NCBI GenBank assembly: GCA_002269645.1
Contig: NIVC01000646.1
Coordinates: forward strand, 186,001-250,000
Length of the DNA: 64,000 nt
From: Macrostomum lignano
Lineage: Eukaryota
Direction: 5' to 3'
Below the pieces are notes generated by a model. The model ran no database searches. It worked only from the letters and a program-made list of their open reading frames with translations, and was not told the DNA's origin. This document shows, piece after piece, positions 12,001-59,440 of this stretch (positions within the stretch are counted from its first letter, which is position 1; every line of letters starts with the position of its first letter). A program made the translations under genes and the position numbers.

Positions 12001-12163
12001 GACCCACAGTCTGCAATCAGACAATGACCCACTGACTGCAATCAGACAATTACCCACAGTCTGCAATCAGACAATGACCCACAGACTGCAATCAGACAAT
12101 GACCCACAGACTGCAATCAGACAATGACCCACAGACTGCAATCAGACAATGAATGACGCACAG
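1..12163. repeat. 25-bp tandem satellite (CAG[T/A]CTGCAATCAGACAATGACCCA)n, runs off the left edge
   Basis: Directly visible 25-nt period with a T/A dimorphic site and AATG-insertion or deletion variants; no ORF in the track. Confidence 0.98.
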
Positions 12164-16080: not shown

Positions 16081-16369
16081 TGTCTAGATAGTACAGTATG
16101 CAATTCCAACTGGCCATGTCGCATCAATCAATAATTATTGAATTTGCTACTAGGAAAGTTCCTTATAATACTGATTTCCACTGCGTCTACATGCAACACA
16201 AAGCAGCCCTGATACGCCCTCTTGTGATTACTGACTTCTTATTTTGTCAGATCGGTGTGCACTTTGTTTCAATTGGGCTACGTAATGCATGCACTATGAA
16301 GGGATTAATGAAAATGAGCAATGCAAGTTTTGCTTGCTTGTATCGAGGGGAAGCCGTCATTTGCAGTAA

Positions 16370-17062
16370 TGACTGCCAGTGACATTTGACTGCCAGTGAC
16401 ATTTTGACCGTCAGTGACATTTGACTGCCAGTGTCATTTGACTCCGATTGACATTTGACTGCCAGTGACATTTTGACCGTCAGTGACATTTGACTGCCAG
16501 TGACATTTGACTGCCAGTGAAATTTGACTGCCAGTGACAATTGACTGCCAGTGACAATTGACTGCCAGTGACAAGTTGACTGCCAGTGTCATTTGACTGC
16601 CAGTGACAAGTTGACTGCCAGTGACATTTGACTGCCAGTGACATTTTGACCGTCAGTGACATTTGACTGCCAGTGTCATTTGACTCCGAGTGACATTTGA
16701 TTGCCAGTGACATTTTGACCGTCAGTGACATTTGACTGCCAGTGACATTTGACTGCCAGTGAAATTTGACTGCCAGTGACAATTGACTGCCAGTGACAAT
16801 TGACTGCCAGTGACAAGTTGACTGCCAGTGTCATTTGACTGCCAGTGACAAGTTGACTGCCAGTGACATTTGACTGCCAGTGACAATTTGACTGCCAGTG
16901 ACAAGTTGACTGCCAGTGACATTTGACTGCCAGTGACAATTTGACTGCCAGTGACAATTTGACTGCCTGTGACATTTGACTGCCAGTGACATTTGACTGC
17001 CAGTGTCATTTGACTGCCAGTGACATTTGACTGCCAGTAACATTTAACTGCCAGTGACATTT
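16370..17062. repeat. 17/18-bp minisatellite (GACTGCCAGTGACATTT)n
   Basis: Visible tandem repeat; the short ORFs here are repeat translations. Confidence 0.95.
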
Positions 17063-17397
17063 TACCGCCATTTGCCGGACTGAATTGCATACAAGCAAAG
17101 CAAAACACTTTTTTTTCAACTATTCTTTTAACTTGGACACTATTCCAGGAATTGTTGATGCCAAACAACTCCTTAATTAATTTATGCAGCAACAGCAGCT
17201 GGGACAGGCAAGTAATGGTGAAACCGATCGATCCTCCCACCTAAGAATGGCGTGAAGTGTTGTGTTAAAAACTTATATTTAGCATACACTATAAATAAAT
17301 GGTTTACTGTTCGGCGCACAGCTGACATGGTACACCCACAGATTCTACAATGACTAGATGGGTCACTAAAAGCATGTATGCTTAGTAAAAACACTTT

Positions 17398-18361: not shown

Positions 18362-21332
18362 TCAATCCCAATCGTCAGCGGTGACCGGCTGTGTAGCCAC
18401 CGGGTTGGCACGGAACATCCTCTCGGCGAAGTCGCCCTCGTCGGGCTGCTCGCGGAACCGGTCTCTGGCGACGCTGCGCCTCATGTCGCGATTGCTGCCT
18501 ACAAAGCCGCCGAAGCCGCCGAAGCCGCCGCCGCAGGACTGGTCCGCGTAAACGTCGAGCCAGTCTGGCACGGACTGACCGGACTTCTCCAGATTCTGGC
18601 GCAACTTGAGGGCCAGGGCCGAGTCGCGTCCGTGGTCGTAAAACGAGATCGACTTTCCCGGGTTGCCGCAGCGACCTGTGCGACCAATGCGATGCACGTA
18701 CATGTCGAAGTCATTCGGCAGGTCCATGTTGATCACCAGCTCGATTCCGTTGATGTCAACGCCGCGAGCCGACACGTTTGTGGCGACCATAATCGGCAGC
18801 CTGCCACGCTGGAACGAGCGCAGGGAGATTTCTCTTTCGCGCTGCAGCCGGTCCCCGTGAATTGTGGTGCACGGGAAGCCGCCGTCAGATAGCATGAGGC
18901 CGACATAGTCGGCTCTGCGCTTTGACTCAACAAAGATCAGAATGCGATCGTCCGCCTGGCTGGGGTCGCTGCGCCAACGCTTGAGAATTTCAATCAGAGC
19001 GGCCTGCTTGTCGTCCTGCTGCACCTCGCGAACTTCCTGAGTCACGTCGGGATTGGCTGCGCCCACCTGACCCACAGTCAGGTACAAATAGTTCTGCAGG
19101 TACTGCTGAGCCAAAGCTTGAATCTGACTAGGGAACGTGGCCGAGAACATCACAATCTGCCTGTCAGAAGGCATCTGCTCCAGCGTCCAGGTCACCGAGT
19201 CCAGGAAGCCCCTGTCAAGCATCTGGTCGGCCTCGTCAAGCACAAGGAAGCGGGTCTTGTTCAGGCTGACAATGTTCCTCTCGGCAAAGTCCTTCAGCCG
19301 GCCGGGAGTGGCCACCAGAATGTGGCAGCCGTTAGCCAGTTCCGCGCGCAAGTAGTCGGTCTTGGGACCGCCGTACACGCGCTTGACGCGAATATTTGTG
19401 CCAGCCAGAAATCCCCTGGCAGAAGGAATGAGATGAAGAGCGATCGCTATAGCATCGCTTCAAATACAATCCCAAAATTTTGCCTATTAATAATTACGTA
19501 CTTTAAATTGTACATTTAGTACCGTTTATATCGATTGACCCTAAAATGCCGGTTTGACACTTACTCATTTACCCTGGCACTTGGTCTCTGTCAGGACGAA
19601 CAGAAAGTTGGAAAGCTTACCTAGCGAAATCATAAATTTGATTGCACAGCTCTCGGGTGGGAGTCAGTATAAGAGCGACCGGGTAGGTGGTGTACTGAGC
19701 AACAGTAGAATCGCTGGTGTCCAGCTCGGCGATCATCTTTGCCAGAGGTAGCAAAAAGGCCGCAGTCTTGCCCGAGCCCGTCTGGGCGCAGGCCATCACA
19801 TCTCTTCCTTTGAGGATGATGGGGATGCCGTACTTCTGCACCGGCGTGAGCTTGTTGTAGTTGTACTTGCGGAGAATGTTATCCAGCATCACGCTGGGCA
19901 GCCCGATGGCATCGAAGCTGGTCAGGTAGCCCGGCTTGTCGGTTCCCGACACCTCTACGTTGATTTGCTCGTACTTGTCGAAATTGATGCCCGTGTGGAC
20001 GGTCCGGCTGTAAATCTCGTCTAGCTGAGACTCTTCAGGCACGTGAGCAGTCGAGGCACCGGGGGCATCACCGGCGGCGACATTCGGGCAGTCGGCAGAG
20101 ATGTGGCCCGTCTCCTTACAGCGGAAGCAGGCACGTGCGTCCGCGTTTGGACATTCGCGAGCAAAATGGCCACTCTGGTTGCACTTGTAGCATACAGACC
20201 CGCCACCGCCGCCTCCAGCTTCAGCGTTTGGACACTCGCGGGCAAAATGGCCACTCTGGTTGCACTTGTAGCAGACAGAACCGCCACCGCCGCATCCAGC
20301 GCCATCATCAGCGGAGGCTCGAAAGCCACCTCGGCCTCCTCCGCGGCTGCCAAAGCCACCACCGCGGCTGCCGAAGCCACCTCCACCACCTTCAGCGCCA
20401 TCATCAGCGGAGGCGCCAAAGCCACCTCGGCCTCCTCCGCGGCTGCCAAAGCCACCACCGCGGCTGCCGAAGCCACCTCCACCACCATCAGCGCCATCAT
20501 CAACGGAGGCTCCGAAGCCACCTCGGCCTCCTCCGCGGCTGCCGAAGCCACCTCCGCCACCATCAGCGCCATCATCAACGGAGGCTCCGAAGCCACCTCG
20601 GCCTCCTCCGCGGCTGCCAAAGCCACCACCGCGGCTGCCGAAGCCACCTCCGCCACCATCAGCGCCATCATCAACGGAGGCTCCAAAGCCACCTCGGCCT
20701 CCTCCACGACTGCAGAAGCCACCACCACCGCGGTTGCTGAAGCCACCACCACCACCGCGGCTGCCGAAGCCACCTCCGCCACCTTCAGCGCCATCATCAG
20801 CATGGGCTCCGAAGCCGCCACGGCCTACGCCGCGGCTGCCGAAGCCACCTCCGCCACCATCATAAGCGGAGGCTCCGAAGCCGCCACGGCCTCCTCTACG
20901 AGTACGACTGCCGAATCCGCTATCACCGCGGCTGCTGAAGTCATCACCACCACCGCGGCTGCCGAAGCCACCTCCGCCACCTTCAGCGCCATCATCAGCA
21001 TGGGCTCCGAAGCCGCCACGGCCTACGCCGCGGCTGCCGAAGCCACCTCCGCCACCTTCAGCGCCATCATCAGCATGGGCTCCGAAGCCGCCACGGCCTA
21101 CGCCGCGGCTGCCGAAGCCACCTCCGCCACCTTCAGCGCCATCATCAGCGGAGGCTCCGAAGCCGCCACGGCCTCCTCCGCGGCTGCCAAAGCGACCACT
21201 GCGACCAGTCTCGCTTCTGCCAGTCTCACCTGCATTACGGTCGGCTTCAAGGGTCAGCTTTGAAAAATCATCAGTCAATGGCGCCCATTCGTCTTCGTTG
21301 GCGTCTTTAATAAGGAATCTCTTGCCAGCCAT
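18362..21332 (-). CDS. vasa: Vasa/DDX4 DEAD-box RNA helicase, copy A (921 aa, 2 exons, 3 CCHC knuckles)
   Basis: Exons 21332-19621 and 19415-18362 with a phase-2 GTAAG..CAG intron. RGG/FG repeats, motifs [38 protein letters not shown] and acidic C-terminal Trp (DDWD). Confidence 0.95.
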
Positions 21333-21851
21333 ACGCTGCTGTTTTAGATTGCCAGAAGCATAAGAGTTTTAATGCGATCGGTGACATCGGTGACAAACTC
21401 TATAAGTTTCTTTATAAATGGTGAACACTAAATGTACCCATGCGTTAATAGGTGTTAATAGAAAATCAGAGGGCGCCTTGGTTCTACATGTAGATTGGGG
21501 GCATCAATGATTACTGTACTCGTACCATAGACATTTTAGCTCAAGCTACACCCCGAGAGTGAGGGACGGGGTGTGGGGGCGAAGCCCTACCCACTACCAT
21601 AGACTAATTTGTTTTCTAGTAAATAAACTTCACAAATTTGCAGCCGGTTAATAGACCTTCGGCCATAGACAGCTCGTTTTATATCTATTTAACCTTAGAT
21701 TCTAAACACTTATTTTTTCAGCCAAATTGAGGATTGCAATTTGGCAGCAGTAGATTATGGTCTTGCCAAAAGGCAAGCGAGTTTATAAAAAGTAACCAAT
21801 TTGATAATTCTGATCTTAACTACATGGAAGTCGGTGTTTAAGCATGATTTC

Positions 21852-22073
21852 TATTGGGTAAAACAGAAATTTTTCGCAATTTGGAAAGTTAAGCCTACAG
21901 AAATTTCTAGAGGCTTCTAGAAGGTTTTGTGTGCAGAGGTATATAAATGCCTTAGACCGACGCAGAGCAACCCAAATTCAAGTTTGAGCTACAGTGCTAC
22001 AGTACTATTACATGTACAGTACTTAATTTCATAGAAAGCTTCACAAACCGCGAGAACTCTGTTTTACCCAATA
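21852..22073. mobile_element. Small putative MITE with 15-bp inverted repeats (possibly TA-flanked)
   Basis: TATTGGGTAAAACAG at 21852-21866 and CTGTTTTACCCAATA at 22059-22073. Confidence 0.45.
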
Positions 22074-22802
22074 CAAGAGCCGTTGCTGCTGGCATTCTTA
22101 TTTGTGCTGATGTCTATGGCCTAATTATCAACTTGTTTGCCTTTTTTCCGTCTGCCTGTTTATGAGCAACATCATATCTACTTGCTACCAAATGGTTTAG
22201 TTTCCCGTACTTTTACTTGTACTGCGTGTATGTATGTACGTATGAAATTGAATGAAGTTGTATAATAGATATCTTACTGAGCTTTCCGTACTCAGTGATA
22301 TTACTGAATTTATTATTTAATTTAGATTTCCCTACAAGCGTATAACGCAAAAAGTAATATTTAAACCACAGATACTAGACTAACTACGAGCAGAAACGTC
22401 AATCGTAAAAATGGCTTAACTACTCTTACTTCAGTAGCAAAACTAGCGTTTTGCCTTTGCAATAAGATTATAAAACCAGCATTTTGTTTTTTTAATAATA
22501 CAAGATATTTTAAAGCTGCAACATTGTCTCTGCCTTTTCAACAAGCAGATCCATTTGAGTAACGTATTTATCCTGTTTTTCTGTTATCTTGTTAAGCGAC
22601 ACCAGAAAGCCACAGATTCTAAATTATTAAAAAAATAATTTGACGGAGGAAAACTTAAAAGTAAAACCCCAAAACCAGTGCATGTGCAAAGCGAAAAAGA
22701 AAAAGGGGTGGCGTCCCAGCCCCAGTCAGGCCGATAACAGTTAACTGTTTAGGCTTTTCTCTTGCCCGCTTGCGCCTGACTTTGGCCTCACTCCTTACTA
22801 TT

Positions 22803-23053
22803 CTCATTGGCTGAGCTAGATTGGGCCTTCCCCAACCCTAGGCTCTGACTTTGACCTCTCTCCTTCTGCTCTCTCATTGGCTGAGCTAGATTGGGCCTGC
22901 CCCAACCCTAGGCTCTGACTTTGACCTCTCTCCTTCTGCTCTCTCATTGGCTGAGCTAGATTGGGCCTGCCCCAACCCTAGGCTCTGACTTTGACCTCTC
23001 TCCTTCTGCTCTCTCATTGGCTGAGCTATATTGGGCCTGCCCCATTGGCTGAG
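22803..23053. repeat. 70-bp tandem repeat (~3.5 copies) carrying CCAAT boxes
   Basis: Units start at 22803, 22873, 22943 and 23013; each contains CTCATTGGCT (AGCCAATGAG on the minus strand). Confidence 0.9.
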
Positions 23054-24624
23054 TTTCGTCCGTCTTGTGAAGTTGTGTTCACTTGTGCACATAAAGTTAA
23101 ATGCATGTTGTTATTTCTTAATTAACCCTATATTCTCAAGAGGCTGCAAACGCCGAGCAAGGAAAGGAAATTTTAGATGCCACATTAAATTTAAGTGATT
23201 CGGCATAGACAAACTACAGAAAAGGAGTCGACGCTCTACTTTTGACAGCTTTAATTGCGAGTGACATCTACTAGCTATGCTGATAGTTATTCTAGTATCT
23301 GTGATTAAAACCAAGGAGTGTTGAGAGCGTGTTGCATGCCAAGGCTCATTAACATTAAGCATTGTACGCTCGTATTTTCTGGGATGTTAATTGCTTTAAT
23401 TAACTTGTCCGAGTGAGTATGGACTCCTTTTGATGACCTTTCCCTATTTATCAGTAAGGTTTTTAAGGTTGGAAACAGCTATTTAGACCAACACATGGAC
23501 AAGTTTCCCTACATCAAATAAGAAAAAACTAAAGAAAAAGAGCAGCCAAATTTGAACAAAATAAAATAACCAAAGGATCGAAAGCCGATTTATTAAATGC
23601 ATCTTGCGAAGCGGACCGCGGAGCACAATGATAATTTCACAAAGGCGTTTCTTTAATCAACTGCAACACGAATGAATCACCAAATAAAAATAATTGGTGA
23701 ACGGGGCTTTATTGCTGTGGCCTTACAAATTGCAAGATATCGGAGGCAGCCTTATATTTTGAATCTAATTAAGGAAGCATATTTGCCCCTTGGTTCGATT
23801 CGATTTCATAGCACAGTAATACAGATAGCACAACAGTGTGCAGACAGCACAGCAATACAGTGAGCAGACAGCGTGTTATGCTACTAAAATGAGCAAACTG
23901 TACCATTGAATCGAATCATGAGACGCGGCTCAATGGGGGCGGGGTACTGGGTAAGCTAACCTGAAGTCTAGTAGTGATAAAGCTACTCTATAAACTAGGC
24001 TTTGAAACGATATTAAAAAGTAGAATATACAAATATAATAATAATAATAATAGTTAGTTTGGCTTAAACGGAAGTAGTATAAAGACGCGATATATAGATT
24101 AGCACCAGTTAGCACCAGGTGTGTATAAAAATGCAGCTTGTAAACAAATATTGCAGCATCGAGATTCCATCGCTGTCTCCTTCAGCTGTGAAAATCATGA
24201 GGACAGGAGCATCTGCAGCAAGCTAGCGCTAAACAGCAGAGTGCACAGGAGCTCAATCGATTCTATTACACATATAGGTTTATTTAGAACCACCGGAGGA
24301 CCCTGAGCACGCACTGCTCATTTTTGGAAAAAAAATTGGGCCATCGCAAATGTAATTAGGACTATTAAGAAATGACAGGGCCTATTTTTAAAAAAAAAGA
24401 TTGCAAAAATAATAAATTTGCCGAGACGATACAAAGCGTTTTAATAAAAATGTTTCAACGCAGATCGAGCACCAAGACAGCGAATTACCAGAGATCTGAC
24501 TCGCAGTGAATGGGAAAAGAAATAAACACGAAATGGCAACAAAAAGTCAAACAAGTACGAACACCGTGCAGTAAAAATTGTTTCTGCATGAAAACTTTCA
24601 GACACAGGTCGAGCAGCGCGGACC

Positions 24625-27600
24625 TCAATCCCAGGCCTCTTCTTCGGCTGCCGGAGCAGCGGCTGGGGCAGGACGGAACGCGCTCTCGGCGAAGTCGCCC
24701 TCGTCGGGCTGCTCGCGGAACCGATCTCTGGCGACGCCGCGCCTCATGTCGCGATTGCTGCCGCCTACGAATCCACCGACGCCACCCATGTCGCCGCCGC
24801 CGGACTGGTCCGCGTAAACGTCGAGCCAGTCGGGCACGGACTGACCGGACTTCTCCAGATTCTGGCGCAACAGGAGGGCCAGGGCCGAGTCGCGTCCGTG
24901 GTCGTAAAACGAGATCGACTTTCCCGGGTTGCCGCAGCGACCTGTGCGACCAATGCGGTGCACGTACATGTCGAATTCGCTCGGCAGGTCCATGTTGATC
25001 ACCAGCTCGATTCCGTTGATGTCGACGCCGCGAGCCGACACGTTTGTGGCGACCATGATTGGATTCTTGCCCCTCTTGAAATCCCTGATAGCAGTCTCGC
25101 GCTCGCGCTGCTGTCGGTCTCCGTGAATTGTGGTGCACGGCAGCTGCTTCTTCTGTGTCAGAGCCAGTCCGACAAAGTCCGCCTGTCGCTTTGTCTCCAC
25201 GAAGATGAGAATCCGGTCGCTCTTTCGAGCCGGATCCGAATGCCACTCATCGATGACTGACTCCAGAGCGGCCTGCTTGTCGTCCTGCTGCACCTCGCGA
25301 ACTTCCTGAGTCACGTCGGGATTGGCTGCGCCCACCTGACCCACAGTCAGGTACAAATAGTTCTGCAGGTACTGCTGAGCCAAAGCTTGAATCTGACTAG
25401 GGAACGTGGCCGAGAACATCACAATCTGCCTGTCAGAAGGCATCTGCTCCAGCGTCCAGGTCACCGAGTCCAGGAAGCCCCTGTCAAGCATCTGGTCGGC
25501 CTCGTCAAGCACAAGGAAGCGGGTCTTGTTCAGGCTGACAATGTTCCTCTCGGCAAAGTCCTTCAGCCGGCCGGGAGTGGCCACCAGAATGTGGCAGCCG
25601 TTGGCCAGTTCCGCGCGCAAGTAGTCGGTCTTGGGACCGCCGTACACGCGCTTGGCGTGAATATTTGTGCCAGCCAGAAATCCCCTGACAGAAAAAAAAG
25701 GGGTGAAAATGCTTACATAAAACACAACGCTATAGTTCCAATTTGAAAAAATATTTGCTATATAGGAAACTAACAAAACTTGTCTTTATAGTCGATATTA
25801 TTGAAACGAACCTTTTAAACATCATAAGGATAGACGTTTTCACGCATAATGGATTGACAGTAATGGACTTGAATATTAAGCTATTTTTTTTTCAGTTTTT
25901 CGAAACCATATCGGGTCGTCTAGCGGAAGAATAGCTACTTGATAAGGTCAGGAATCAGGGATGATGGGATCTTCAATTATAGAACAACATCTGGAGATGG
26001 GATATCTAATTATAAAACAATACCTGTATGATAAGAAGTTCCGACAAAGTGAAATTTTACGTGAAAGCGGCCCGTGCTGTTAAAATATTTGACGGAACTC
26101 TGAGAACAGTTGGTGAATCCATTTAAAGTTGACAGTCACAAGAGCTGCAGCAAATGGTGTGGGTGATGCATGGTAACGAGTGATTTAAATCACACAGCGT
26201 GATCAGGACTTTTTGGATTGTAAAAGAAGGAAAAGTGCAGTTTAGAAATTTGTCTGCCAGATACCCGATCGGGTGGCAATATAACACCAAAGACCTCAGA
26301 CGCGCTTTTCCTAGGCATGGATGCCGTGGCACTTACTTTCCAATGAAACGTTCACCGTCAGCGTTACCATAAAACAGCGTGCAGCAAGGTCCAGGCGATC
26401 CAGAGAAGGGAACTCAATGGACTGCGCTTGAGTGTCATTCCTCAGCCAAATCCTGAATTTCGCATCGCATCCGTGGTTCCAGCAGAGTAAGTGGACCTCA
26501 TGTTGAATAGGTGAATAGGTGTACCTTCATTGTCAGCTGGTCCAGCTCCGAGGGTGCAATCGTAAGTCTACGATTCTTTTAAGTCCACGAAGTCTAAGTC
26601 TTCGTGCAATCAAGTATCGACCATATACATGTATGGGGGCTGCTGCTTTGAGCTTTGACAAGACCAATACATAGGCTATGGTCAAATCCTTAAGTTTTAG
26701 AAAGTTTGAATGCTCCTAGCGCTGTGCAGAGAACTCCAAAACAACAAATATTCAGCAAATTACCTGACGGACTCGTAAATAATGGAAACGGAGTCTTTAC
26801 TCCATCGACGTAATCGTGCGTCGGAATTCCTGCTGCACAAGTACATAGCGTACGGAGACAATATCATGTTCCAGCGGGCTGCGTAAAAGTGGTACAACCG
26901 CTTTAAAGGAGAATCATCAACTGATGATGAACCTCGCTCTGGAAGACCGAAACAAACCAGGACGACAGAGAAAAAGAATTTGTTGGATTGACCATCGATG
27001 GACTTGCGAACTATCCAACATTTATCAACCAGCGTCTATCGGATTTACATGAAGGCCCTTGGAAACGGCAGGTAGGTACTGCAGGTGGGTTAGAGCCTGG
27101 CTCTCGGATCCTCACCCAACAGCCATTTGGTGTCCGAACCGGCGCCGATTTTCGCCAACGGAAAATTGATAGTAGCAATCTGGATTCTGGAAGTCCATTC
27201 GGTAGATATGATTCTCAGCGAGTACAGTACTCTAACAGTCTAACATTCTGCTTATGGATTTTGTGAACAAGCAGTGTTTCCCAGCTGAAACTTTATCTTG
27301 TACTTCTGTAAAAGACGCTGGATATGGAAAACAAATTGCTAATCGAGTCGTCGTGTCCTGAAGAGCATGCCTTATGCCCTGTCATGGATTCGAGCGTTGG
27401 ATGCAGCCGCATCATTGTATCTCGACTAAGCTGTTCAACAAAGTATGCTGCAAAGTATACTTCACTGCTTCTCGAGTCGCACTAGGTAGGGCAGTAGCTC
27501 CAACCAGCACGTTGGCACATTCTTCCAAGAATGTGTGCGTGGCCACCTTCAGCGCCATGTGAAGGGCTTCGAACTTCTTTGTCCGATTTGAGCTCTTGGA

Positions 27601-30215
27601 AAAGTAGGCGTGAATATCCTCACACAGAGATGCAGCAGAGGAAAAGTGCGTATCGATAGTATAGCGATCACCATTTGCCACAACATCAAGGGGTGCCGCC
27701 ACCAATATTAAAAAGGTGCTGCAGTTCAGGCTCCGATCGCAGACACTTGACTACTCTGGGATGCACTGCGCGCATAACGTTGCAGTTGTCCGAAAAGTCA
27801 AAATTCCACTTGTGGTATGACAGCGCATGACGTTTTTGAATGCGTGTAAAAATTTGCTGAAAGCAACACTGGATAGATCGAGCTGGAAAAGCTCAACAAT
27901 CACTGACACTAAGATGCTATATTATTTGAAATAAATTGTTATATGCAATACATACAGCCATCCTCTCTAAGAATATTTAGCTTCATTTTTTCAGTTAAAG
28001 GCCATCGATTATCGAATAAAATTGAACAAGCTATATAAACTCAATTCAACTTATTACCATTGTGTTTGAGCTATTAAAGATTAATCAATAGCAAAATTAT
28101 TTACCGACAAAGAACTTACCTAGCGAAATCATAAATTTGATTGCAGAGCTCTCGGGTGGGAGTCAGTATAAGAGCGACCGGGTAGGTGGTGTACTGAGCA
28201 ACAGTAGAATCGCTGGTGTCCAGCTCGGCGATCATCTTTGCCAGAGGTAGCAAAAAGGCCGCAGTCTTGCCCGAGCCCGTCTGGGCGCAGGCCATCAGAT
28301 CTCTTCCTTTGAGGATGATGGGGATGCCGTACTTCTGCACCGGCGTGAGCTTGTTGTAGTTGTACTTGCGGAGAATGTTATCCAGCATCACGCTGGGCAG
28401 CCCGATGGCATCGAAGCTGGTCAGGTAGCCCGGCTTGTCGGTTCCCGACACCTCTACGTTGATTTGCTCGTACTTGTCGAAATTGATGCCCGTGTGGACG
28501 GTCCGGCTGTAAATCTCGTCTAGCTGAGACTCTTCAGGCACGTGAGCAGTCGAGGCACCGGGGGCATCACCGGCGGCGACATTCGGGCAGTCGGCAGAGA
28601 TGTGGCCCGTCTCCTTACAGCGGAAGCAGGCACGTGCGTCCGCGTTTGGACATTCGCGAGCAAAATGGCCACTCTGGTTGCACTTGTAGCATACAGAACC
28701 GCCACCGCCGCCTCCAGCTTCAGCGTTTGGACACTCGCGGGCAAAATGGCCACTCTGGTTGCACTTGTAGCAGACAGAACCGCCACCGCCGCATCCAGCG
28801 CCATCATCAGCGGAGGCTCGAAAGCCACCTCGGCCTCCTCCGCGGCTGCCAAAGCCACCACCGCGGCTGCCGAAGCCACCTCCGCCACCTTCAGCGCCAT
28901 CATCAGCGGAGGCGCCAAAGCCACCTCGGCCTCCTCCGCGGCTGCCAAAGCCACCACCGCGGCTGCCGAAGCCACCTCCACCACCATCAGCGCCATCATC
29001 AACGGAGGCTCCGAAGCCACCTCGGCCTCCTCCGCGGCTGCCGAAGCCACCTCCGCCACCATCAGCGCCATCATCAACGGAGGCTCCAAAGCCACCTCGG
29101 CCTCCTCCGCGGCTGCCAAAGCCACCACCGCGGCTGCCGAAGCCACCTCCGCCACCTTCCGCGCCATCATCAGCGGAGGCTCCAAAGACACCTCGGCCTC
29201 CTCCGCGGCTGCCAAAGCCACCACCGCGGCTGCCGAAGCCACCTCCGCCACCATCCGCGCCATCATCAGCGGAGGCTCCAAAGCCACCTCGGCCTCCTCC
29301 GCGGCTGCCAAAGCCACCACCGCGGCTGCCGAAGCCACCTCCGCCACCTTCAGCGCCATCAACGGAGGCTCCGAAGCCACCTCGGCCTCCTCCACGGCCG
29401 AATCCGCCACCTCCACGACTACCAAATCCACCACTAGAACCTTGTCCTTCAGCATTCGGGCAGTCTCGTGCCATATGGCCACTTTCGTTGCACTTGAAGC
29501 AAGCAGAGGAGCCGCCACGGCCTCCACCACCGAAGCCGCCACGTCTTTCTTGAGAATCAGCATTCGGGCAGTCTCGTGCCATATGGCCACTTTCGTTGCA
29601 CTTGAAGCAAGCAGAGGAGCCGCCACGGCCTCCACCACCGAAGCCGCCACGTCTTTCTTGAGAATCAGCATTCGGGCAGTCTCGTGCCATATGGCCACTT
29701 TCGTTGCACTTGAAGCAAGCAGAGGAGCCGCCACGGCCTCCACCACCGAAGCCGCCACGTCTTTCTTGAGAATCAGCATTCGGGCAGTCTCGTGCCATAT
29801 GACCGCTCTCGTTGCACTTGAAGCAAGCAGAGGAGCCGCCACGGCCTCCACCTCGACCACCCCCGAATCCTCCACGGCTTCCGAAACCAACGCTATCATC
29901 GTTCTGAGTGTCTTCATTCCGGCTTCCAAAGCCACCGCGGCCGCCACCGAAACCACCACGACCTTCAGAACCTCCTCTGTCTCCATTTTGCGCACCGCTG
30001 CCAAAGCCACCGCGACCTCCACCAAACCCACTGCGGCCACTGCCGAAACCTCCTTCTCCATTAGCCGTGTCCCCACTTTGAGAGTTCGAAGCGCCACCGA
30101 AGCCGTTGCTGCCGTTAGAAGCTCCAAAGCTCATCTTCTTGAAGTCATTATTCAGATTTCCCGACGACCATTCGTCTTCAACGTCGCCTTTGGGCAAAAA
30201 TCCTCGGCCAGCCAT
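24625..30215 (-). CDS. vasa: Vasa/DDX4 DEAD-box RNA helicase, copy B (1051 aa, 2 exons, 7 CCHC knuckles)
   Basis: Exons 30215-28120 and 25684-24625 with a 2435-bp phase-2 intron at the same position as copy A; all helicase motifs intact; C-terminus EEEAWD. Confidence 0.93.
26340..27800 (-). pseudogene. Degenerate hAT-like transposase fragments inside the vasa B intron
   Basis: Minus-strand peptides in the expected order: FSDNCNVM (~27796-27773), [19 protein letters not shown] (~27630-27575) and [16 protein letters not shown] (~26418-26345), broken by stops and frameshifts. Recognised from memory of hAT motifs; no HMM was run. Confidence 0.5.
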
Positions 30216-30759
30216 TTTTAATGCAACTTTTGGTAATTTTGAAAACAGTACATAAACAAATATTTTATCATAGCAAAAGTCAATAATTGAGCAGCGAAAA
30301 TTTCATTTACGACAATTAGCCAAGTACATGTAATTCTCCTACAGACGTAAGGAAACAGATAGAAAGAAATGGAAAAATAATTGTCGATTAGTAACAAAAA
30401 AGACTCTATCTACACTTATTGCACAATTGTGGCACAGTCATAACTGTTTCACAACTGTTTCATAGCACAGTAATATGCTGATTAGCATAATTGTGTCATA
30501 GCTGTGCTAACTGTGCCAAAAGGACGGTCGAAAACAATAATAAATGATCTAATTGGCACGTTTGGCAGAATTTTAGATTCTGCTAGGACAATGGTTTCCC
30601 ACCTGGACTATGGCCTAAAAGTTTGACTGGTGAGCAAAGACATAATCTTAGTCCATTTTCCTCCCCTTTGGATCTTGATTCCATTCTTATTATTGTTTGT
30701 GCGGACGATAGCACAGCCTTTAGCAAAAATGCTTTAAACAGAAGCATTTTAATGTATGT

Positions 30760-31046
30760 TTAAAGCCATGGCTCATTTATTGGCTCTTACCCCCAGCTTA
30801 AACCCTCCAACCGCGCCTTTCCACACTACCCCCCGCCCCTCCCCAATTTTTATTGCCTTTCTCGGAATTCCAGCCTAAGGCTGCCAAGTACATTTCAGTG
30901 GCTGGCTAATGTACATTACTGCTGAACCAATTAGCAAGTTTTTTACGCCTGCAAGCTTGGCTTTTGAACTTAAAGTCATTTCAGCTGCATTTTATTTCTA
31001 AAAAAATAGCCTATGTATTTTCTTTTGCTACTGAACTGAAATTAGC
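30760..31046 (-). mobile_element. Inverted copy of the 17398-17744 MITE-like element
   Basis: Reverse complement aligns by eye with ~17400-17700, including TTGCTACTGAACTGAAA at ~31025-31041. Confidence 0.75.
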
Positions 31047-32623
31047 TGTTTTGCTAAGTATATATGCCTGAATGGCCCATCTTGCCATTTTAGGATCTGG
31101 GGGCATAATAGGGAATCTTAACACTAATTTTACTGAACATCTTGGCTGCAAAGCTGATTTTAGTTTAATGAAATTTACACAAGAAGAACATGACAGTAAA
31201 ATTAGCAAGGCAATCTTAATTAACTTTATATTTTACTTAGTATACAACATAGAAAAGATCTTGATTGATTCTTTGCATTGTGAACCACAATGCAAATATG
31301 TTATCGCGTCGAAATCTTAGGATTAGATGCAGATTTAATCAGCAAATACACATCAATAGAGTCAGGCTAGTTACTTCGCAAGGGGTCTTGGGCACTGTCG
31401 CAAATCAAGAAGGCTAGCAGTTATGCCGATTCTGCTGACCTCTGAGCACGCACAAAAAATAATAAAGGTTCGTTCTGAGCGTCAAAAAGCAAAAATGACA
31501 AAAAAACAATAATAACGTGTACTAAAAACCCTAATAAAAACAGAAAAAACTACCCGTAACCGAAGCGAAATTATGAAAGACCTGAGTTTTTGCTTTGCGT
31601 AGCAACTAATAAGATTTCATCAAAAAATTTAGGATAGATTTAATCATTTAAGATAATGTTTGTCACTAAAAGCACATAACTAGTGAATGAAACCGATCAA
31701 TTAGAGTTCAGTATAGCATGCACATATAACATAGTGAAAATAATAAAACCAATAATAAAATAAGCAATGTAGGTGTAGCGTATAATGAATATAGTTTAGC
31801 GTTTGACCAATTAGTGGCAAAAAGCTAAAACATTTGGTGGCCAAACTTTTAGTGACTAAAAAAATCTACAGAAATTATCTGTACCTTAGAGCCTCAAATG
31901 TTTTGTTTTTCTTATTCTTTCGTTTCTCTCTTTGAAGATGTATCCCACCGTCTATGCGCTTCTAATCAATAAATCAAGTCGAAGGTTCAGTAGGTTTCTC
32001 TCGATTTTTAACCCTCAACATGGATGTTTATTTCTAATTCCTGATGGTTGCAGTTTCGAATAGACAATAAACATGCAATGTTTTTAAAGCAATTCAGTGA
32101 AATAAAAAGGGGGCTACTTATCTATATTGGTGCACTTCGATCCGGAAGTCTCTAGATGGTCTCTTCGTTTGATTAGCATATTGGAGTTTCCTTGTCAGTC
32201 TTTTGAGTCTAGGTGGTGTTGGATAATAACTCTGGATGGAGGGCGGAGCAGGAGTAGAGGAGCAGCGGGAGGGGCAAAAGGACGGGAGCTTCATTCTCAC
32301 TAAACGCTAGTATATACATGATTTCTATAACGCATTTTATAGGTGGTCGCTTCACGCAATAGGTTCTTTACTGCCGCAAAAGCATGTGCTGTACTCTCCA
32401 GATAAAAAACCGTCCGAAGTTCGCATTAGACTAAAAAATAGCGTTGGGCATATGTTTAAATTAAGATCACTATATGCAGCAGTAGATGTCTTTAATCTAC
32501 GATTCCAAATCTTGTCAAGCCAAGTCGGGGGAAGAAATCTGAATCAAACAATCGAATTAACCAAAAATACTACCAATTACTGATGTGCAGTAGCGGGATT
32601 ATACAAAAAAACAGATTTAATCA

Positions 32624-35600
32624 TTAATCCCATGGATCGTCGTTGGATAGCTGAGCAGCGGCTGGGGCAGGACGGAACGCGCTCTCGGCGAAGTCGCCCT
32701 CGTCGGGCTGCTCGCGGAACCGGTCTCTGGCGACGCCGCGCCTCATGTCGCGATTGCTGCCGCCTACAAAGCCACCGACGCCGCCCATGTCGCCGCCGCA
32801 GGACTGGTCCGCGTAAACGTCGAGCCAGTCTGGCACGGACTGACCGGACTTCTCCAGATTCTGGCGCAACAGAAGGGCCAGGGCCGAGTCGCGTCCGTGG
32901 TCGTAAAACGAGATCGACTTTCCCGGGTTGCCGCAGCGACCTGTGCGACCAATGCGGTGCACGTACATTTGAAAGTCGCTCGGCAGGTCCATGTTGATCA
33001 CCAGCTCGATTCCGTTGATGTCAACGCCGCGAGCCGACACGTTTGTGGCGACCATAACCGGCTTCTTGCCCCTCTTGAAATCCCTGATAGCAGTCTCGCG
33101 CTCGCTTTGGAGCCGGTCTCCGTGAATTGTGGTACAGAGCAGCTGCTTCTTCTGCGTCAGAGCCAGTCCGACAAAGTCCGCCTGTCGCTTTGTCTCCACG
33201 AAGATGAGAATCCGGTCGCTCTTTCGAGCCGGATCCGAATGCCACTCGTCGATGACTGACTCCAGAGCGGCCTGCTTGTCGTCCTGCTGCACCTCGCGAA
33301 CTTCCTGAGTCACGTCGGGATTGGCTGCGCCCACCTGACCCACAGTCAGGTACAAATAGTTCTGCAGGTACTGCTGAGCCAGAGCTTGAATCTGATTAGG
33401 GAACGTGGCCGAGAACATCACAATCTGCCTGTCAGAAGGCATCTGCTCCAGCGTCCAGGTCACCGAGTCCAGGAAGCCCCTGTCAAGCATCTGGTCGGCC
33501 TCGTCAAGCACAAGGAAGCGGGTCTTGCTCAGACTGACAATGTTCCTCTCGGCGAAGTCCTTCAGCCGGCCGGGAGTGGCCACCAGAATGTGGCAGCCAT
33601 TGGCCAGCTCATTACGCAGGTAGTCCGTCTTGGGTCCGCCATAAATTCGTTGAATTCGAACGCCCGTTCCAGCTAGAAAGCCTCTGTAAGTGATGTGAGA
33701 ACAAATGCTTGCTTTTATCTAGCAGAAACTAAAAACAAGATTAAAAGTAACACTAGACTAATGGAATATATTTGATTCAAGAATAGCAATGAACTTACAG
33801 GCCGAATTCAAACGTCTGGTTGCAGAGTTCTCTGGTCGGTACCAAGACAAGAGCAACCGGATAAGTAGTATAACCTCCACCAGTGCTGATATCGCCTATC
33901 TCAGTGATTAACTTTGCCATAGGCAGTATAAAAGCCGCCGTCTTCCCGGACCCTGTCTGTGCACAGGCCATTAAATCGCGACCTTTAAGTACAATCGGAA
34001 TAGCGTATCTCTGCACGGGTGTTAGCTTTGTATACTTGAACTTCTTAGAAATATTGTCCATTAGGACAGGGGACAAGCCAATTTCATCAAATGATTGCAA
34101 GTAGCCGGGTCGGTCAACACCTGAAACTTCGACATCAATTTTTTCGTAGTTGTCAAAGTTAATGCCGGCATGGACAGTTTGGTTGTATATCTCATCAAGT
34201 TCCGACGTCTCCGGGATATGAGCAGCTGATGGACCATCTCTGCTAGTGCGTTGAGTGTTCGGACATTCTGCGGCAAAATGGCCAGACTCACCGCAGTTAA
34301 AACAAGCAATCGCGCCAGAATTAGTGCATTCTCGCGCAAAGTGTCCTGGTTGCTGACACCTGAAGCAGACGCTATCACCATTGTTATTTGCATTATCCCG
34401 ACGATAAAAGTCTCTACTTTCGAATCCACCTCCGAAGCCTCGATTGCTCCTTTCGAACTCTTCACCACTTTGATCTTCTCTACTTAACGATCTAAAGCCG
34501 TCCATGTCTCTCGATCCCCGACCACGACCGCCGAAGCCTCCTCGGGATCGTTCGTTTCTGCCGCCATCAAAGTCGCTTTCTTGATTGCCACCAAAACCAC
34601 CTCTTTGACCAAGGCCTCGGCTACCACCAAAGCCTCCTCGAGGTTCTGCGTTTCTGTCAAATTGGAAATCGCTCTCTTGATTACCACTGAACCCACCTCT
34701 TTGGTCACGGTCACTGCCGAAGCCACCACGGCCTCTACCGCTATCAAAGCCTCTACGAGCTTCAAAGCCACCACGGGCTCGACCGCTACCGAAGCCACCT
34801 CGAGGCTCTTCATTTCCGCCGTAATCGAAGTCGCTCTCTTGATTGCCACCGAACCCACCTCTTTGACTACGGTCACTGCCGAAGCCACCACGGCCTCGAC
34901 CGCTACCAAAGCCGCCTCGGGGTTCTTCGTTTCTGTCGTTACCAAAGCCTCCACGGGCTCCAAAGCCACCACGGCCCCGACCGCCATCAAAGCCTCCATG
35001 GGGTTCTTCGTTTCTGTCGTTACCAAAGCCTCCACGGGCTCCAAAGCCTCCACGGCCCCGACCGCCATCAAAGCCTCCACGGGCTCCAAAGCCTCCACGG
35101 GCTCGACCGCTACCAAAGCCGCCTCGGGGTTCTTCGTTTCTGTCGCTATCAAAGCCTCCACGGGCTCCAAAGCCTCCACGGGCTCGACCGCTACCAAAGC
35201 CGCCTCGGGGTTCTTCGTTTCTGTCGCTATCAAAGCCTCCACGGGCTCCAAAGCCACCACGGCCCCGACCGCCATCAAAGCCTCCACGAGGTTCTTCGTT
35301 TCTGTCGCTACCAAAGCCTCCACGGGCTCCAAAGCTACCACGGCCCCGACCGCCATCAAAGCCTTCACGAGGTTCTTCGTTTCTGTCGCTACCAAAGCCT
35401 CCACGGGCTCCAAAGCCACCACGGCCCCGACCGCCATCAAAGCCTCCACGAGGTTCTTCGTTTCTGTCGCTACCAAAGCCTCCACGGGCTCCAAAGCCAC
35501 CACGGCCCCGACCGCTACCAAAGCCACCTCGGGACTCTTCATTTCCGCCGTAATCGAAGTAGCTCGCTTGATTGCCACTAAGATGTCCTTGGTTTCTGTG

Positions 35601-35768
35601 GCTACTGGATCCTTGAACACGATTACCGCCAACATCGATATTTAAATGTTCACTACTCCAGTCGCTAGTGCCTTGCTGATTGATATCATCTCCTGATGCT
35701 GGTTCAGCAGCCCATTCGTCATTAAAATCAGCGACTGCTGGCTGGATAGGCCGGCCTCGACCAGCCAT
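32624..35768 (-). CDS. vasa: Vasa/DDX4 DEAD-box RNA helicase, copy C (1009 aa, 2 exons, 2 CCHC knuckles)
   Basis: Exons 35768-33799 and 33683-32624 with a 115-bp phase-2 intron at the homologous position. Start MAGRG chosen by homology to copies A and B; C-terminus DDPWD. Confidence 0.93.
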
Positions 35769-36918
35769 TAGAACAGCATGCATGTAATTAAAATATTAAA
35801 AAGTTGTTTTTATCGCCGATTTTGTAATAGAAAAATAAAAATAATGTTCACTTAAAAGATGTTTGGTTCACACAATTTAGCTAGCCCTATTTAGGTCTTA
35901 GGGCTGGGACAGGTATTTTCACAGTGTTTAATCTTGGATCGTTAATCTAAAAATCCGATAAGCCACTACGTGACATTCATGTACGCAGCCCGGTGTAACG
36001 CTTTAGCCTAAACTTAAAACGAGGATCGCATTATTAGTACCGCATAAAATAAAAACAGTTTGACGTATTTGCTTCGACCGAAAAATATTTTTTCAAGTTT
36101 TATTTTTCCCAAAAAATAGACAGGCCGATTTTTCGCCCAGTGTATAGAAATATGCATTTAATAAATATATTTTAATTGGTTGTTAAACTTATGGAACACA
36201 TTGTGCATAACGAGAAGAGAACGAGAGAAACAAAAGCAAGCACGCTACATTAAACGAATTAAACTTAAGATATTATACCGGGGAATTAAAAAGAAACACG
36301 GGTCAATGTGCAAAGACACAAAGAGACACGGACAAGTACGCGAGAAAATAAAGCACAACAAAGACCGACAAAGTCGTGCAGGTTTGAATGAATTTTATCA
36401 TTGACTTACCAGTATATTAGAGAGAATAAAAAACATTTCAGACATTGAAAATTATTTGAAGGGTCAAGAAGCAGAGTTAGGACAAAAAGAATCGTAGCAA
36501 GTTCCTAGCAAGTGTCAATGAAACAGCTCAATGCGCAAGGTTAGACTAACATTCGAGGTCACTACTGTAGCGTTATTATTAAGCGAAGAAGTTATCAGAG
36601 AGAAGAATCCACGGTGCTGTTGCGGCTTCATTAGCAATAAATGAGTGTAAAAAGCACAATGGTTTTTGCTGCTACGTCTTCAGTACATTAATAAAGATGA
36701 GCCGCTACTACACCCAGCTACAAATAGGAACAAGTTTGAATATAAATTATTATTTTTATAGCGCATAATTAATTGCGTTAAAACTGATTAATAAGTCAAG
36801 TATGGCCAATTACTAGCTCCATTTCAACCAAAGTAAGGGAACAAAATATTAAATTGTCCCAGCTAGTCTCCTTGCTCAGGCCGCAAACAGGCGTCGCTAT
36901 CAAGCAGTTGCCGCAATC

Positions 36919-37787
36919 TTACAAATCTTCATCGTCGTCAGGCAGGGGAGCCTCGGCGGCAATTTGAATCTCCTGCTCATATCGTTGAGCGAGGCTCGGG
37001 TCCATGGCCAGTTCGGGAGGCGCCAGGGCCGGCATCTCAACGAACTCCAGGTGCGCGTCGCCGACAAGCTTCCTAGCTAGCCAAAGGAACGGCTTCTCAA
37101 AATTGTAGTTGGACTTCGCGCTAATATCGTAGTATTGCAAGTTCTTTTTCCTGTGAAAAGTGATGGTCTTCGCTTTCACCTTGCGATCCTTAATATCCAC
37201 CTAAGTATGGCAAAGTTGGGGTTTTCAAAGATATTATATTGAGCTAGATGTTGTAAGTGTAATTTCATATATAAAGGTTTATGGCGGCCGGCTAAAGATA
37301 CCTTATTTCCAACCAGAACGATTGGGATGTTTTCGCACACTCGCACCAGATCTCTGTGCCAATTAGGCACGTTCTTGTAAGTGACGCGAGACGTCACATC
37401 GAACATGATGATAGCGCACTGGCCCTGGATGTAATAGCCATCGCGAAGTCCGCCGAATTTCTCCTGGCCAGCTGGAAACAAGCAAACAAGCATTCATTTC
37501 AGCACTAACCGTTGCGCAACACAATTAAACATAGAACCGTTTGCATTTTAGCACATCTTACTGAAAAACTCATCTTAAATAACAGCCTTACCTGTATCCC
37601 AAACGTTGAAGCGCATCTTTCCACGAGTAGTATGAAAGTCCAACGGGTGAACTTCAACGCCAAGAGTGGCTACGTACTTCTTTTCGAATTCGCCAGTCAG
37701 GTGACGCTTAACAAAGGTAGTCTTGCCAACGCCGCCATCGCCAACGAGGACCAGTTTGAATTGGGCGATCACGTTTGTGTTGTCCAT
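36919..37787 (-). CDS. Ran: Ran GTPase (215 aa, 3 exons)
   Basis: Exons 37787-37592, 37471-37302 and 37200-36919; [20 protein letters not shown] and SAK motifs; acidic tail DDDEDL. Confidence 0.97.
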
Positions 37788-38900
37788 GGCAAGGGAGAGT
37801 GCAACTTCTGCAAAATTTGAGACGCAAAAGCTAATACAGCTCTGAGAAAATTCGGTCTAATGTAGGATAACTTCGGTAACAAATGTAGGATATTTTAATC
37901 CCATGAAAGCCAATTATAGCGACCATAGAGCGACGAAAGAATGTGTACTCCAAGCTTTTCATGCGAATTTTATTACCATAGTTGGGCTGGGCTCGAACCC
38001 AATGGGTTAAAGCACATCCTTACAATTACATAGAAAACCTTATGTGCCTATATTAGCTTTCCATGATAATTAAGCTGAAAACACAGACGACTGACAGTTG
38101 TGTGCTTATTCAGGTCAATTTTTTCAATTTCATTCTTAAATTCAATTGCTGATAAGTCAAACTATAGCTAGAGGTTGTATAGGATTGTTTGTTGGAATTA
38201 CAGAAATGGGACTGGCATCCCAATTTGCCAGGATTCCGGAATTTTAGGAACAGGATTGAACCACTGTCATACCTCTAACTGCAAATAACACTTGAACTTC
38301 ATATTCAAAACCTTATACAAATTAATATTTATAAAACAAACTATAGGATCTTAGCAACTATCAGACTATGATTTCTAATTTTAAATGAACATTATATCCT
38401 TATAATTCTATTTGAAAAATTCTAATAAAATAAACATTTAAGTCTATTTTTCAACAGTTCAAAATTAGCAAAATACATATAGATGTATAATCATTAAACT
38501 TCCCTAGGCTTTGGTATATGCCAGCAATGTTTCATCATAATCTAATTTACTAGTTTGTATATTTAATCTATAAGTCTGTAAATATCAAACAAAAATTTAG
38601 ATTACTAACCTATCAGATAATCCTTATATCTTAGAATACAAGCCTAATTAGTAGGTCGAATTATACTTTTAACTTTTTATTATACATATTAGCTTAAAAT
38701 AAATACCTTACTAAATGAAACGACAAACTAATTTTGATTAATAAATCAAATACATAACATAATGTATACATTTATATGCTCACTCTAATGGGTCAACACT
38801 TTACCCCATACATTATACCATTTTTATTAATTTTCAACAACTTTGCAAGTCATATGTACTAAACATATTAGGGATGCTTTATAATGCAAATTGAGATTGA

Positions 38901-39290
38901 GGGGGCTGTAGCCCAGCGGTAGCGCAGCTGCTCTGGTGTGCCAGCAACCTAGGCTTGATTCCAAGTGCAGTCACATTAATTTGGGGCTGAATTAGAATCT
39001 CGGCTTAGCTTTTCTCATGCAATTAACAGTCTTGAGAGCCAACCCCCAAGGCGCAGTGAAGTGTACATGCCTAACGATAATATAAAGTTAGGGCCCCTGT
39101 ACACTCCTGTGAGTGTGTGCCTGCGTACATATCCACGCGCTTGTATGCCTGCTCAGGGGAGTCAGCGGAATGGGCAGTAATGCCTCTTGCCAGTTGTGTG
39201 CCTATGTTGCTTAAAGTGCGCCAGGGTGCAAACAACCCCCTGCCTCTAATAATAAAATAATGGGGACTAGATTGGTAGGCTTTTGGTATT
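38901..39290 (+). mobile_element. tRNA-derived SINE flanked by a 53-bp direct repeat
   Basis: tRNA-like head GGGGCTGTAGCCCAGCGG with degenerate B-box GGCTTGATTCC; body resembles 59700-59920; direct repeats at 38842-38894 and 39367-39419 (1 mismatch). Confidence 0.7.
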
Positions 39291-42200: not shown

Positions 42201-42419
42201 ACTGATTTTAACTTTGTGTTCTATATGCAAAACTACATGTAAAGAGAGAAAATTTTAATAAGAAATTAAGAAATAAAAAATTAAAGAAATTAAATAAGAA
42301 AGTTAGAACATTAGTTAGAGGATTAGATAAATGAGAATGCTACTAACATAGAGTAGATATGCTACCAACAGTGGTCTTAGCAAGTAGGTCATTGATTTTT
42401 TGCACCATTCTATTTTTTG

Positions 42420-46682: not shown

Positions 46683-46734
46683 ACTCTGACCAAGGACCAC
46701 TAGAACGTAACTTCTAGTGGTCCTTGACTCTGAC
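46683..46734. mobile_element. 36-bp perfect hairpin flanked by an 8-bp target-site duplication
   Basis: ACTCTGAC (46683-46690) + CAAGGACCACTAGAA-CGTAAC-TTCTAGTGGTCCTTG + ACTCTGAC (46727-46734). Confidence 0.75.
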
Positions 46735-56055: not shown

Positions 56056-56109
56056 CAAATTATTGGCTGATTGATCTGACTGTTGATTGATCCAAGTAAA
56101 AAATAATCT

Positions 56110-59432: not shown

Positions 59433-59440
59433 CTGAAACG

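Follow-up and report, generated by a model that had tools for sequence, protein, structure and literature searches.

Three tandem vasa genes downstream of Ran

The vasa/DDX4 genes described here lie in a 64,000-nucleotide (nt) stretch of the Macrostomum lignano genome (assembly GCA_002269645.1, contig NIVC01000646.1, positions 186,001 to 250,000), which we refer to as the window; contig sequence surrounding the gene for the GenBank protein of A is 100% identical to window 8362-31338. The minus strand of the window contains three vasa/DDX4 genes, each intact and made of two exons, that follow one another as C, B, A downstream of the gene for the GTPase Ran (Table 1). The array occupies 18362-35768, its ends being the A stop codon and the conserved MAGRG start of C. 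Gene models were assembled from six-frame open reading frames (ORFs) and splice-site sequences, and the spliced coding sequences of A, B, and C are each divisible by three and contain one stop codon, which is terminal. The proteins comprise 921 amino acids (aa) for A, 1051 aa for B, and, for C, 1014 aa from the first in-frame ATG at 35783 or 1009 aa from the conserved MAGRG methionine at 35768. All three introns interrupt the same codon just 3' of motif Ia, between DFAR and GFLAG in A and B and between EFGL and GFLAG in C. A tblastn search of the window returned no vasa fragments beyond the three genes. The long plus-strand ORFs that run across the GRG repeats (for example 20043-21263 and 28542-30221) arise mechanically from GC-rich repeat sequence and were set aside. 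The sequence-only reading of this stretch, made before the present analysis, had proposed three intact copies on one strand at 18362-35768 with a common intron position; the gene models bear out both points, with correct coordinates and a phase-2 GT-AG intron at the same codon in every copy.

The helicase motifs are present and in order in A, B, and C, namely Q, I (AQTGSGKT), Ia (PTREL), GG, Ib (TPGR), II (DEAD), III (SAT), IV, QxxR, V (ARGVD), and VI (HRIGRTGR). Pfam searches identified DEAD, Helicase_C, and zf-CCHC in each protein, with scores of 153-158 bits for PF00270 and 98-100 bits for PF00271, and counted three CCHC zinc knuckles in A, seven in B, and two in C. The proteins begin with related MAGR..(E/N)DEW sequences that place an acidic-Trp motif near the N-terminus (EDEW in A and B, NDEW in C), and they end in ADDWD (A), EEAWD (B), and DDPWD (C). 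They differ mainly in their disordered N-terminal modules. The helicase core is preceded by 437 residues in A, 565 in B, and 529 in C, and the repeat type differs as well: A combines acidic-spaced GRG repeats with three knuckles, B contains an extra four-knuckle array, and C joins RGGFG-DRNEEP repeats and two knuckles to a divergent helicase domain 1. The N-terminal regions contain 23-32 RGG and 23-31 FG motifs and are 28-38% glycine; a glycine-rich RGG/FG region with CCHC knuckles is characteristic of invertebrate Vasa and lacking in PL10. The earlier description of complete motif sets, an acidic C-terminal tryptophan, and differing N-terminal disordered regions is therefore accurate, the last of these extending to length, repeat type, and knuckle number. 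The GenBank protein for A, PAA79236.1 (BOX15_Mlig023312g1, 850 aa), matches our model at 100% but is missing 73 aa of GRG repeats; these residues are in frame in the genome, and the entry looks like a repeat-collapsed transcript model.

Table 1. Positions of the vasa genes, the neighbouring Ran gene, and the tracts that make up the mosaic. Window positions unless codons of the aligned helicase core are given.
Feature	Position	Strand	Remarks
vasa A (macvasa type), exon 2	18362..19415	-	motifs GG, Ib, II-VI; A-specific acidic-Trp tail; includes stop
vasa A, intron	19416..19620	-	205 nt, GT-AG, phase 2
vasa A, exon 1	19621..21332	-	MAGKRF..EDEW start; GRG/FG repeats; Q motif; motifs I and Ia
vasa A, three CCHC knuckles within exon 1	20088-20273	-	
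vasa B, exon 2 (chimeric)	24625..25684	-	first 420 nt A-like, remainder C-like
vasa B, intron	25685..28119	-	2435 nt, GT-AG, phase 2; unrelated to A and C introns
vasa B, exon 1	28120..30215	-	unique N-terminus, then A-like GRG repeats, 3 knuckles, helicase domain 1
B-specific tandem 108-nt units	29449..29852	-	3.7 copies, 98% alike; one CCHC zinc knuckle per unit
vasa C, exon 2	32624..33683	-	
vasa C, intron	33684..33798	-	115 nt, GT-AG, phase 2
vasa C, exon 1	33799..35783	-	81-nt RGGFG..DRNEEP repeats, 2 knuckles, divergent helicase domain 1
Ran GTPase gene	36919..37787	-	three exons; directly upstream of vasa C; synteny anchor
A/B near-identity tract, exon 1	A 19621..20726 = B 28120-29225	-	1106 nt ungapped, 98.8%
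A/B tract, resuming in exon 2	A 18995-19415 = B 25264-25684	-	lies beyond the unrelated introns
Tract common to A, B, and C	A 18995-19330 = B 25264-25599 = C 33263-33598	-	336 nt; motifs Ib to III
B/C similarity tract	B 24625..25599 = C 32624-33598	-	95%; stops at stop codon
Core segment 1	codons 1-160		A vs B: 99.2% nt identity and dS 0.009; C vs A and B: 65% nt identity, dN 0.22, saturated dS
Core segment 2	codons 161-274		all three 98-99.7% identical in window; 95-99.7% including the second-array (L001) copies
Core segment 3, first part	codon 275 to ~340		B follows C; A differs from B/C by ~38% nt
Core segment 3, whole block	codons 275-428		B-C 95.5%, dS 0.125; A vs B/C 79%, dS ~0.5

Membership in the Vasa class

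The relationship of the three proteins to the sister family PL10/DDX3/Belle, with which A, B, and C have a helicase core in common at 47-50% identity, was evaluated by database comparison and phylogeny. Among the best 120 database matches, 119 were of the Vasa/DDX4 type, from sponges to chordates and nearly all ending in an acidic-Trp motif; the single non-Vasa entry among these 120 was a duplicated sturgeon DDX3 model. Comparison with PDB entries ranked Bombyx Vasa (404 bits) above Drosophila Vasa (379 bits) and DDX3X (363 bits). We then used a neighbour-joining tree of 33 cores with 300 bootstraps that included human DDX3X and two M. lignano PL10 sequences taken from the supplement of Fontenla et al. 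2021; this tree replaced an earlier one in which DDX3X was the sole PL10 anchor. A DDX4 versus DDX3/PL10 phylogeny had been named as a check in the sequence-only reading, and all 300 of 300 bootstraps placed A, B, and C on the Vasa side of the split from PL10, in a distance method in which A-C occupy a long branch. Identity to human DDX3X is 72-73% for the M. lignano PL10 proteins and 47% for A, B, and C. The PL10 proteins of M. lignano are encoded by separate genes, lack knuckles, end in DWW, and do not group with A, B, and C. The three window proteins, their counterparts on a second contig (see below), and the published macvasa complementary DNA (cDNA) are united in a single species-specific clade (100%) with a long branch. 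A published maximum-likelihood tree also puts M. lignano sequences in the Vasa clade (PMC8191739). As judged from these comparisons, A, B, and C are bona fide members of the Vasa/DDX4 class and not PL10 proteins.

A fourth vasa-clade helicase, Mli0003381, lies elsewhere in the M. lignano genome. It is highly divergent, with 48% identity to the A-C core, and branches in the tree as the sister of the A/B/C clade; its motif Ib reads TVGR, no knuckle adjoins the core, and the protein ends in EDDWS.

A second array on another contig

The contig NIVC01004514.1 (L001 in the coordinates given here) contains a second array, Ran-C'-B'-A', in the same order and orientation as in the window. It is collinear with window positions 39807-14205 over ~25 kb at 90-98% identity, and the Ran gene upstream of C' encodes an identical protein. 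The genome of the DV1 line is highly duplicated, with 180 Mb in blocks at least 95% identical, and the second array probably goes back to the recent duplication of the genome or to the DV1 line's extra large chromosome, unless it is a diverged haplotype. In two gene models of the earlier ML2 assembly, Mli0008330 and Mli0008817, three helicase cores follow one another as C-B-A. In a self-BLAST of the window, similarity between the three gene units was confined to exons, and the introns, untranslated regions (UTRs), and spacers of A, B, and C gave no match to one another.

The N-terminal modules are type-specific and were retained across both arrays, although knuckles of the 108-nt unit number four in the window copy of B vs two in B'. 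The ratio of nonsynonymous to synonymous divergence (dN/dS) between the two arrays is 0.15 for A, 0.04 for B, and 0.25 for C. Helicase domain 1 of C retains a protein difference of 25% under purifying selection, with a dN of 0.22 and saturated dS. By these measures all three genes are intact and subject to purifying selection, and the combination of complete motifs and selective constraint shows that they encode working helicases.

The intron of B is 2.4 kb in the window (25685-28119) vs ~3.7 kb in the second array (12069-15772 of L001). This length gap suggests that sequence, possibly a mobile element, was inserted or deleted; an ORF of 97 aa within the window intron (27412-27705) had no Pfam match.

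Mosaic structure of the coding exons

Alignment of the six cores by codon, numbered from DEIY, and segment-wise statistics demonstrated that the relationship among A, B, and C changes abruptly along the coding sequence (Table 1). A and B differ at 5 positions in the first 822 nt of the core vs 130 in the other 636 (Fisher p = 1e-43), while B and C differ at 168 positions in the first 480 nt vs 42 in the other 978 (Fisher p = 1e-52). The breakpoints, at core nt ~485 and 822, are sharp. The match between A and B totals 1.5 kb of messenger RNA (98.8%), and 5' of this A-like tract B has its own module, including the four 108-nt knuckle repeats. Where no conversion took place, the coding patches are 35-40% apart in nucleotide sequence, and their synonymous sites are saturated.

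The second array allowed these tracts to be ordered in time. In segment 1, dS is 0.009 between A and B and likewise 0.009 between A' and B', vs 0.083 for both A-A' and B-B'. Within this segment, nine of the variable sites among A, B, A', and B' are contig-specific and two are paralogue-specific. That A and B are closer to each other than either is to its counterpart implies gene conversion after separation of the arrays, in both arrays independently. Both paralogue-specific sites fall in one island, located 25-28 nt into exon 2, that encodes RV in A and A' and HA in B and B'. Since this island is present in both arrays, the identity that flanks the introns is best read as two tracts exchanged at the DNA level. 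Conversion by way of a cDNA was also considered for the A/B identity flanking unrelated introns and was judged unlikely, as the RV/HA island splits the tract in both arrays. For domain 2 of B and C the pattern of sites is 14 paralogue-specific vs 3 contig-specific, and the likeness of these domains mostly predates the split of the arrays.

Collectively, these comparisons indicate, from sequence evidence, old duplicates that evolve in concert via gene conversion between copies. The duplications are old, as seen from the dissimilar introns, UTRs, and spacers and from the 35-40% difference, with saturated synonymous sites, in coding patches that escaped exchange.

Published macvasa and its reagents

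The macvasa gene (Pfister et al. 2007/2008; UniProt A9J0E2) was described as a germline and stem-cell marker and is treated in the literature as one gene 'with two isoforms'. In the window this single published gene is one of three tandem genes. Gene A is of the macvasa type, with the same N-terminus and tail as the A9J0E2 cDNA and 96% core identity. The cDNA is A-type and nearer to the A' copy, with patches of B and C' type: it has the B-specific His-Ala (core positions 143-144), Met205 and Asp213, both specific to C', and eight private changes. It could be either another converted allele or a composite formed during rapid amplification of cDNA ends (RACE) or polymerase chain reaction (PCR). 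When the unique N-terminus of B was used to look for A9J0E5, a second deposited cDNA, low-complexity glycine-rich matches dominated, and not even B' itself was returned.

The published reagents were mapped to the copies. The forward primer of the macvasa in situ probe matches A, B, A', and B', while the reverse primer finds its site only in the tail that A has in common with A'; amplification should yield 1076 nt from window A and 1067 nt, as published, from the cDNA allele. The resulting probe is ~90% identical to B and 87% identical to C, with long near-identical stretches. The quantitative PCR (qPCR) primers of Zhou et al. sit in the 336-nt tract common to all copies. Because neither the probe nor the primers are copy-specific, published expression patterns, knock-down efficiencies, and phenotypes describe the family and not one gene.

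Amplification of vasa in M. lignano was reported by Fontenla et al. 2021 as '4 genes after clustering', with nine VASA BOX15 entries that include BOX15_Mlig023312 (A), Mlig005423 (B'), and Mlig027829 (A') (PMC8191739). Two of these 'four genes', Mli0008330 and Mli0008817 (labelled Vasa in supplementary file 29), are read-through fusions of the whole C-B-A array in which the cores are separated by antisense-frame translation of the GRG repeats. The survey differs from the present description in that it does not cover tandem arrangement, gene structure, or mosaicism. In papers that mention macvasa, and in targeted searches, we found neither the tandem arrangement nor the gene structure common to the copies nor the mosaic described, and GenBank locus tags and names such as Mlig-vasa and Mlig-ddx4 did not occur in searchable main texts.

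Interpretation of the locus

We consider it highly probable that the locus is the M. lignano macvasa family, a tandem Ran-C-B-A trio of Vasa genes that are old duplicates with exons kept in concert by conversion, and that the array is present twice. Ancient duplications would have given rise to three co-oriented vasa genes downstream of Ran. Repeated conversion would then have produced the patchwork, in which B equals A from the GRG repeats through domain 1, A, B, and C are alike over motifs Ib-III, and B equals C in domain 2. The array itself would have been duplicated, with A-B conversion proceeding independently in each array thereafter. By Vasa homology and the effects of macvasa RNA interference (RNAi), the proteins probably act as ATP-dependent RNA clamps and unwinders in the nuage or chromatoid bodies of germ cells and neoblasts, where their activity would support amplification of PIWI-interacting RNAs (piRNAs). 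Any division of labour would be seated in the N-terminal modules, the C-terminal tails, and regulation, since homogenisation of the cores by conversion argues for a shared catalytic function and would confine any specialisation to these parts.

Several observations weigh against this interpretation or limit parts of it. Exon 1 of both A' and B' contains a frame shift inside the GRG repeats (10001-12068 and 20262-22023 of L001), which the annotation spans with an extra 'intron'. These shifts may be surviving long-read indel errors or real decay, so that not every copy is demonstrably intact. The second contig may be a homeologue or a haplotype. Polishing of the assembly with RNA-seq reads could in principle sharpen paralogue identity that is limited to exons. 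We found no paralogue-specific expression data for A or C, and a stem-cell transcript discussed below would be of the B type, going solely by its knuckle score and its length.

Functional data bear on the family as a whole. GenBank gene models are present for A, B, A', B', and C', and the annotation rests on an RNA-seq-guided transcriptome. The macvasa probe stains testes, ovaries, and eggs with a signal that is not paralogue-resolved, and macvasa protein was reported in neoblasts with the paralogues not told apart. After macvasa RNAi, piRNAs were essentially undetectable (PMC4604429), and transposons were derepressed with no early stem-cell phenotype. One DDX4 transcript cluster, trans-spliced and 3.9 kb in length, belongs to the 'neoblast, stringent' set; its zinc knuckles score 131 bits (PMC5816591), compared with zinc-knuckle Pfam scores of 70 bits for A and 50 bits for C. 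An earlier transcriptome likewise has a single DDX4 entry in the neoblast-stringent class.

Subfunctionalisation through the divergent N-terminal modules, as the sequence-only reading had suggested, is plausible from the sequences. A more specific version, which we put forward tentatively, is that conversion maintains a conserved helicase 'chassis' to which three N-terminal modules for condensate formation and RNA binding are attached for use in different cell types, namely neoblasts and the male and female germ line. If so, M. lignano would offer a natural experiment on how the disordered region of Vasa specifies granule identity, and the 'two isoforms' of macvasa would be separate genes. The array might instead provide dosage or redundancy only, with co-expressed, interchangeable proteins whose N-terminal differences reflect neutral repeat drift, a possibility that we rate well short of even. 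Homogenisation of the cores would fit such a role, as would the variation of repeat number between arrays and alleles (seven knuckles in B vs five in B', and 921 aa in A vs 860 aa in the cDNA) and the one coherent piRNA phenotype that follows RNAi against all vasa copies. Set against redundancy are the conservation of type-specific N-terminal modules between the arrays, the 25% protein difference that domain 1 of C keeps under purifying selection, and the presence of just one DDX4 cluster in the neoblast-stringent list.

As to the origin of the mosaic, B could be a Lepore/anti-Lepore product, in which a misaligned unequal crossover between A and C in an ancestral C-A pair gave C-(A 5'/C 3')-A and the mosaic arose in a single event. 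The order C-B-A and the make-up of B, with an A-like 5' core and a C-like 3' core, match this prediction. An unequal crossover should also leave parental flanks, intron, and UTRs on matching sides, and here B fails, as only gene order and core composition fit: no likeness to A or to C is seen in its 5' end (the N-terminus with four knuckle repeats), intron, 3' UTR, or either flanking spacer. In addition, the tract common to all three genes is not accounted for by one crossover, and the A-B likeness in segment 1 (dS 0.009) is younger than the array split (0.083) and arose in both arrays, so that recent conversion is needed anyway. We therefore regard a single crossover as unlikely; an ancient crossover with conversion afterwards is a possible variant.

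It is less probable still that the tracts of near-identity are an artefact of assembly or polishing. The Mlig_3_7 assembly was generated from PacBio reads with Canu and polished by Pilon with genomic and RNA-seq reads, and Illumina or RNA-seq reads that map to several paralogues might have overwritten their exons. That the identity ends at exon borders, that RNA-seq reads were used for polishing, and that GenBank models collapse repeats would be consistent with such an effect. Polishing, however, could not create the tracts from sequences that differ by 35%. The pattern is also contig-specific, A equalling B but differing from A' and B' (nine sites against two), which argues against a polishing artefact, while the paralogue-specific RV/HA island was kept in both arrays and an independently cloned cDNA is likewise mosaic. 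Polishing is thus incapable of producing the large-scale mosaic, and the exact levels of tract identity remain subject to the polishing caveat. Finally, the notion that the three copies are haplotypes or homeologues misassembled in tandem, with one gene per haploid set, which the sequence-only reading had named as its own refutation and for which the highly duplicated DV1 genome might speak, is effectively refuted by the confinement of similarity to exons, by differences in the N-termini, in intron length and sequence, in UTRs and spacers, and, by 35-40%, in parts of the core, by a true second copy that lies separately and is collinear with the same three genes in the same order, and by ML2 models that contain C-B-A.

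Consequences for work on macvasa

Since expansion of the family was already published, what is new here is the tandem structure, the exon-confined conversion mosaic, and a warning about probes and gene models. The name macvasa covers a tandem trio in at least two arrays together with a fourth, divergent paralogue elsewhere, and not one gene. The published in situ probe and qPCR primers, and probably the double-stranded RNA, are unable to separate the copies, and the 'two isoforms' may be paralogues. These points bear on the reading of macvasa expression and of the mild RNAi phenotype, and on knock-out design, as a deletion of ~17.4 kb would be needed per array. The locus clearly exemplifies concerted evolution confined to the exons of a germline helicase family, and it leaves general Vasa biology unchanged.

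Surroundings of the array in the window

The window is rich in tandem repeats, in line with the published description of the genome. Positions 1-12152 are occupied by a 25-bp satellite (consensus CAGTCTGCAATCAGACAATGACCCA, ~480 copies, 93% matches) with strong strand asymmetry (GC skew -0.3, AT skew +0.44). Further minisatellites, in more than 12 arrays with periods of 13-46 bp, lie at 14205-17070, 48240-49562, 50372-54530, and 56109-64000, including a 21-bp unit repeated 136 times at 61150-64000 that continues past the window end; the minisatellite arrays yield many spurious long ORFs. Between Ran and the next repeats is a ~9-kb AT-rich stretch (38000-47000, GC content 0.26-0.32) with no ORF of at least 110 aa. 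An intronless ORF of 418 aa on the plus strand (54799-56055) encodes a rhodopsin-type G protein-coupled receptor (7tm_1, 31.8 bits), and a minus-strand ORF (50528-51271) contains a SUEL galactose/rhamnose-binding lectin domain (56.8 bits). Scanning the window with Rfam and for tRNAs gave no hits.

Comparison with known families

The statement in the sequence-only reading that most animals have one vasa holds loosely; lineage-specific families exist in Mnemiopsis, Sycon, and C. elegans, and amplification in M. lignano itself was already in print. In C. elegans, GLH-1 to GLH-4 are lineage-specific Vasa-like helicases of P granules that are partly redundant. Like A, B, and C, they vary in how many CCHC knuckles they have and in their glycine-rich FG repeats. 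Unlike the tandem trio, their genes are dispersed, and to our knowledge no exon-limited concerted evolution was reported for them.

Five vasa paralogues are present in Mnemiopsis and two in Sycon (PMC5381599), and cnidarians have vasa1 and vasa2 (PMC5381599, PMC5731801). The copies in these animals form species-specific clades, as in M. lignano, and subfunctionalisation was proposed for Sycon. For the vasa genes of Mnemiopsis, Sycon, and cnidarians, we found no report of a tandem array whose middle gene is a chimera.

Structural parallels also come from outside the helicases. The globin Lepore and anti-Lepore genes, the opsins, and RHD/RHCE are tandem families shaped by gene conversion or unequal crossing-over. 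The M. lignano trio resembles them in its sharp breakpoints and in a likeness within arrays that exceeds that between arrays. It differs from them in that the flanks and introns of A, B, and C are fully diverged and the exchange is confined to exons.

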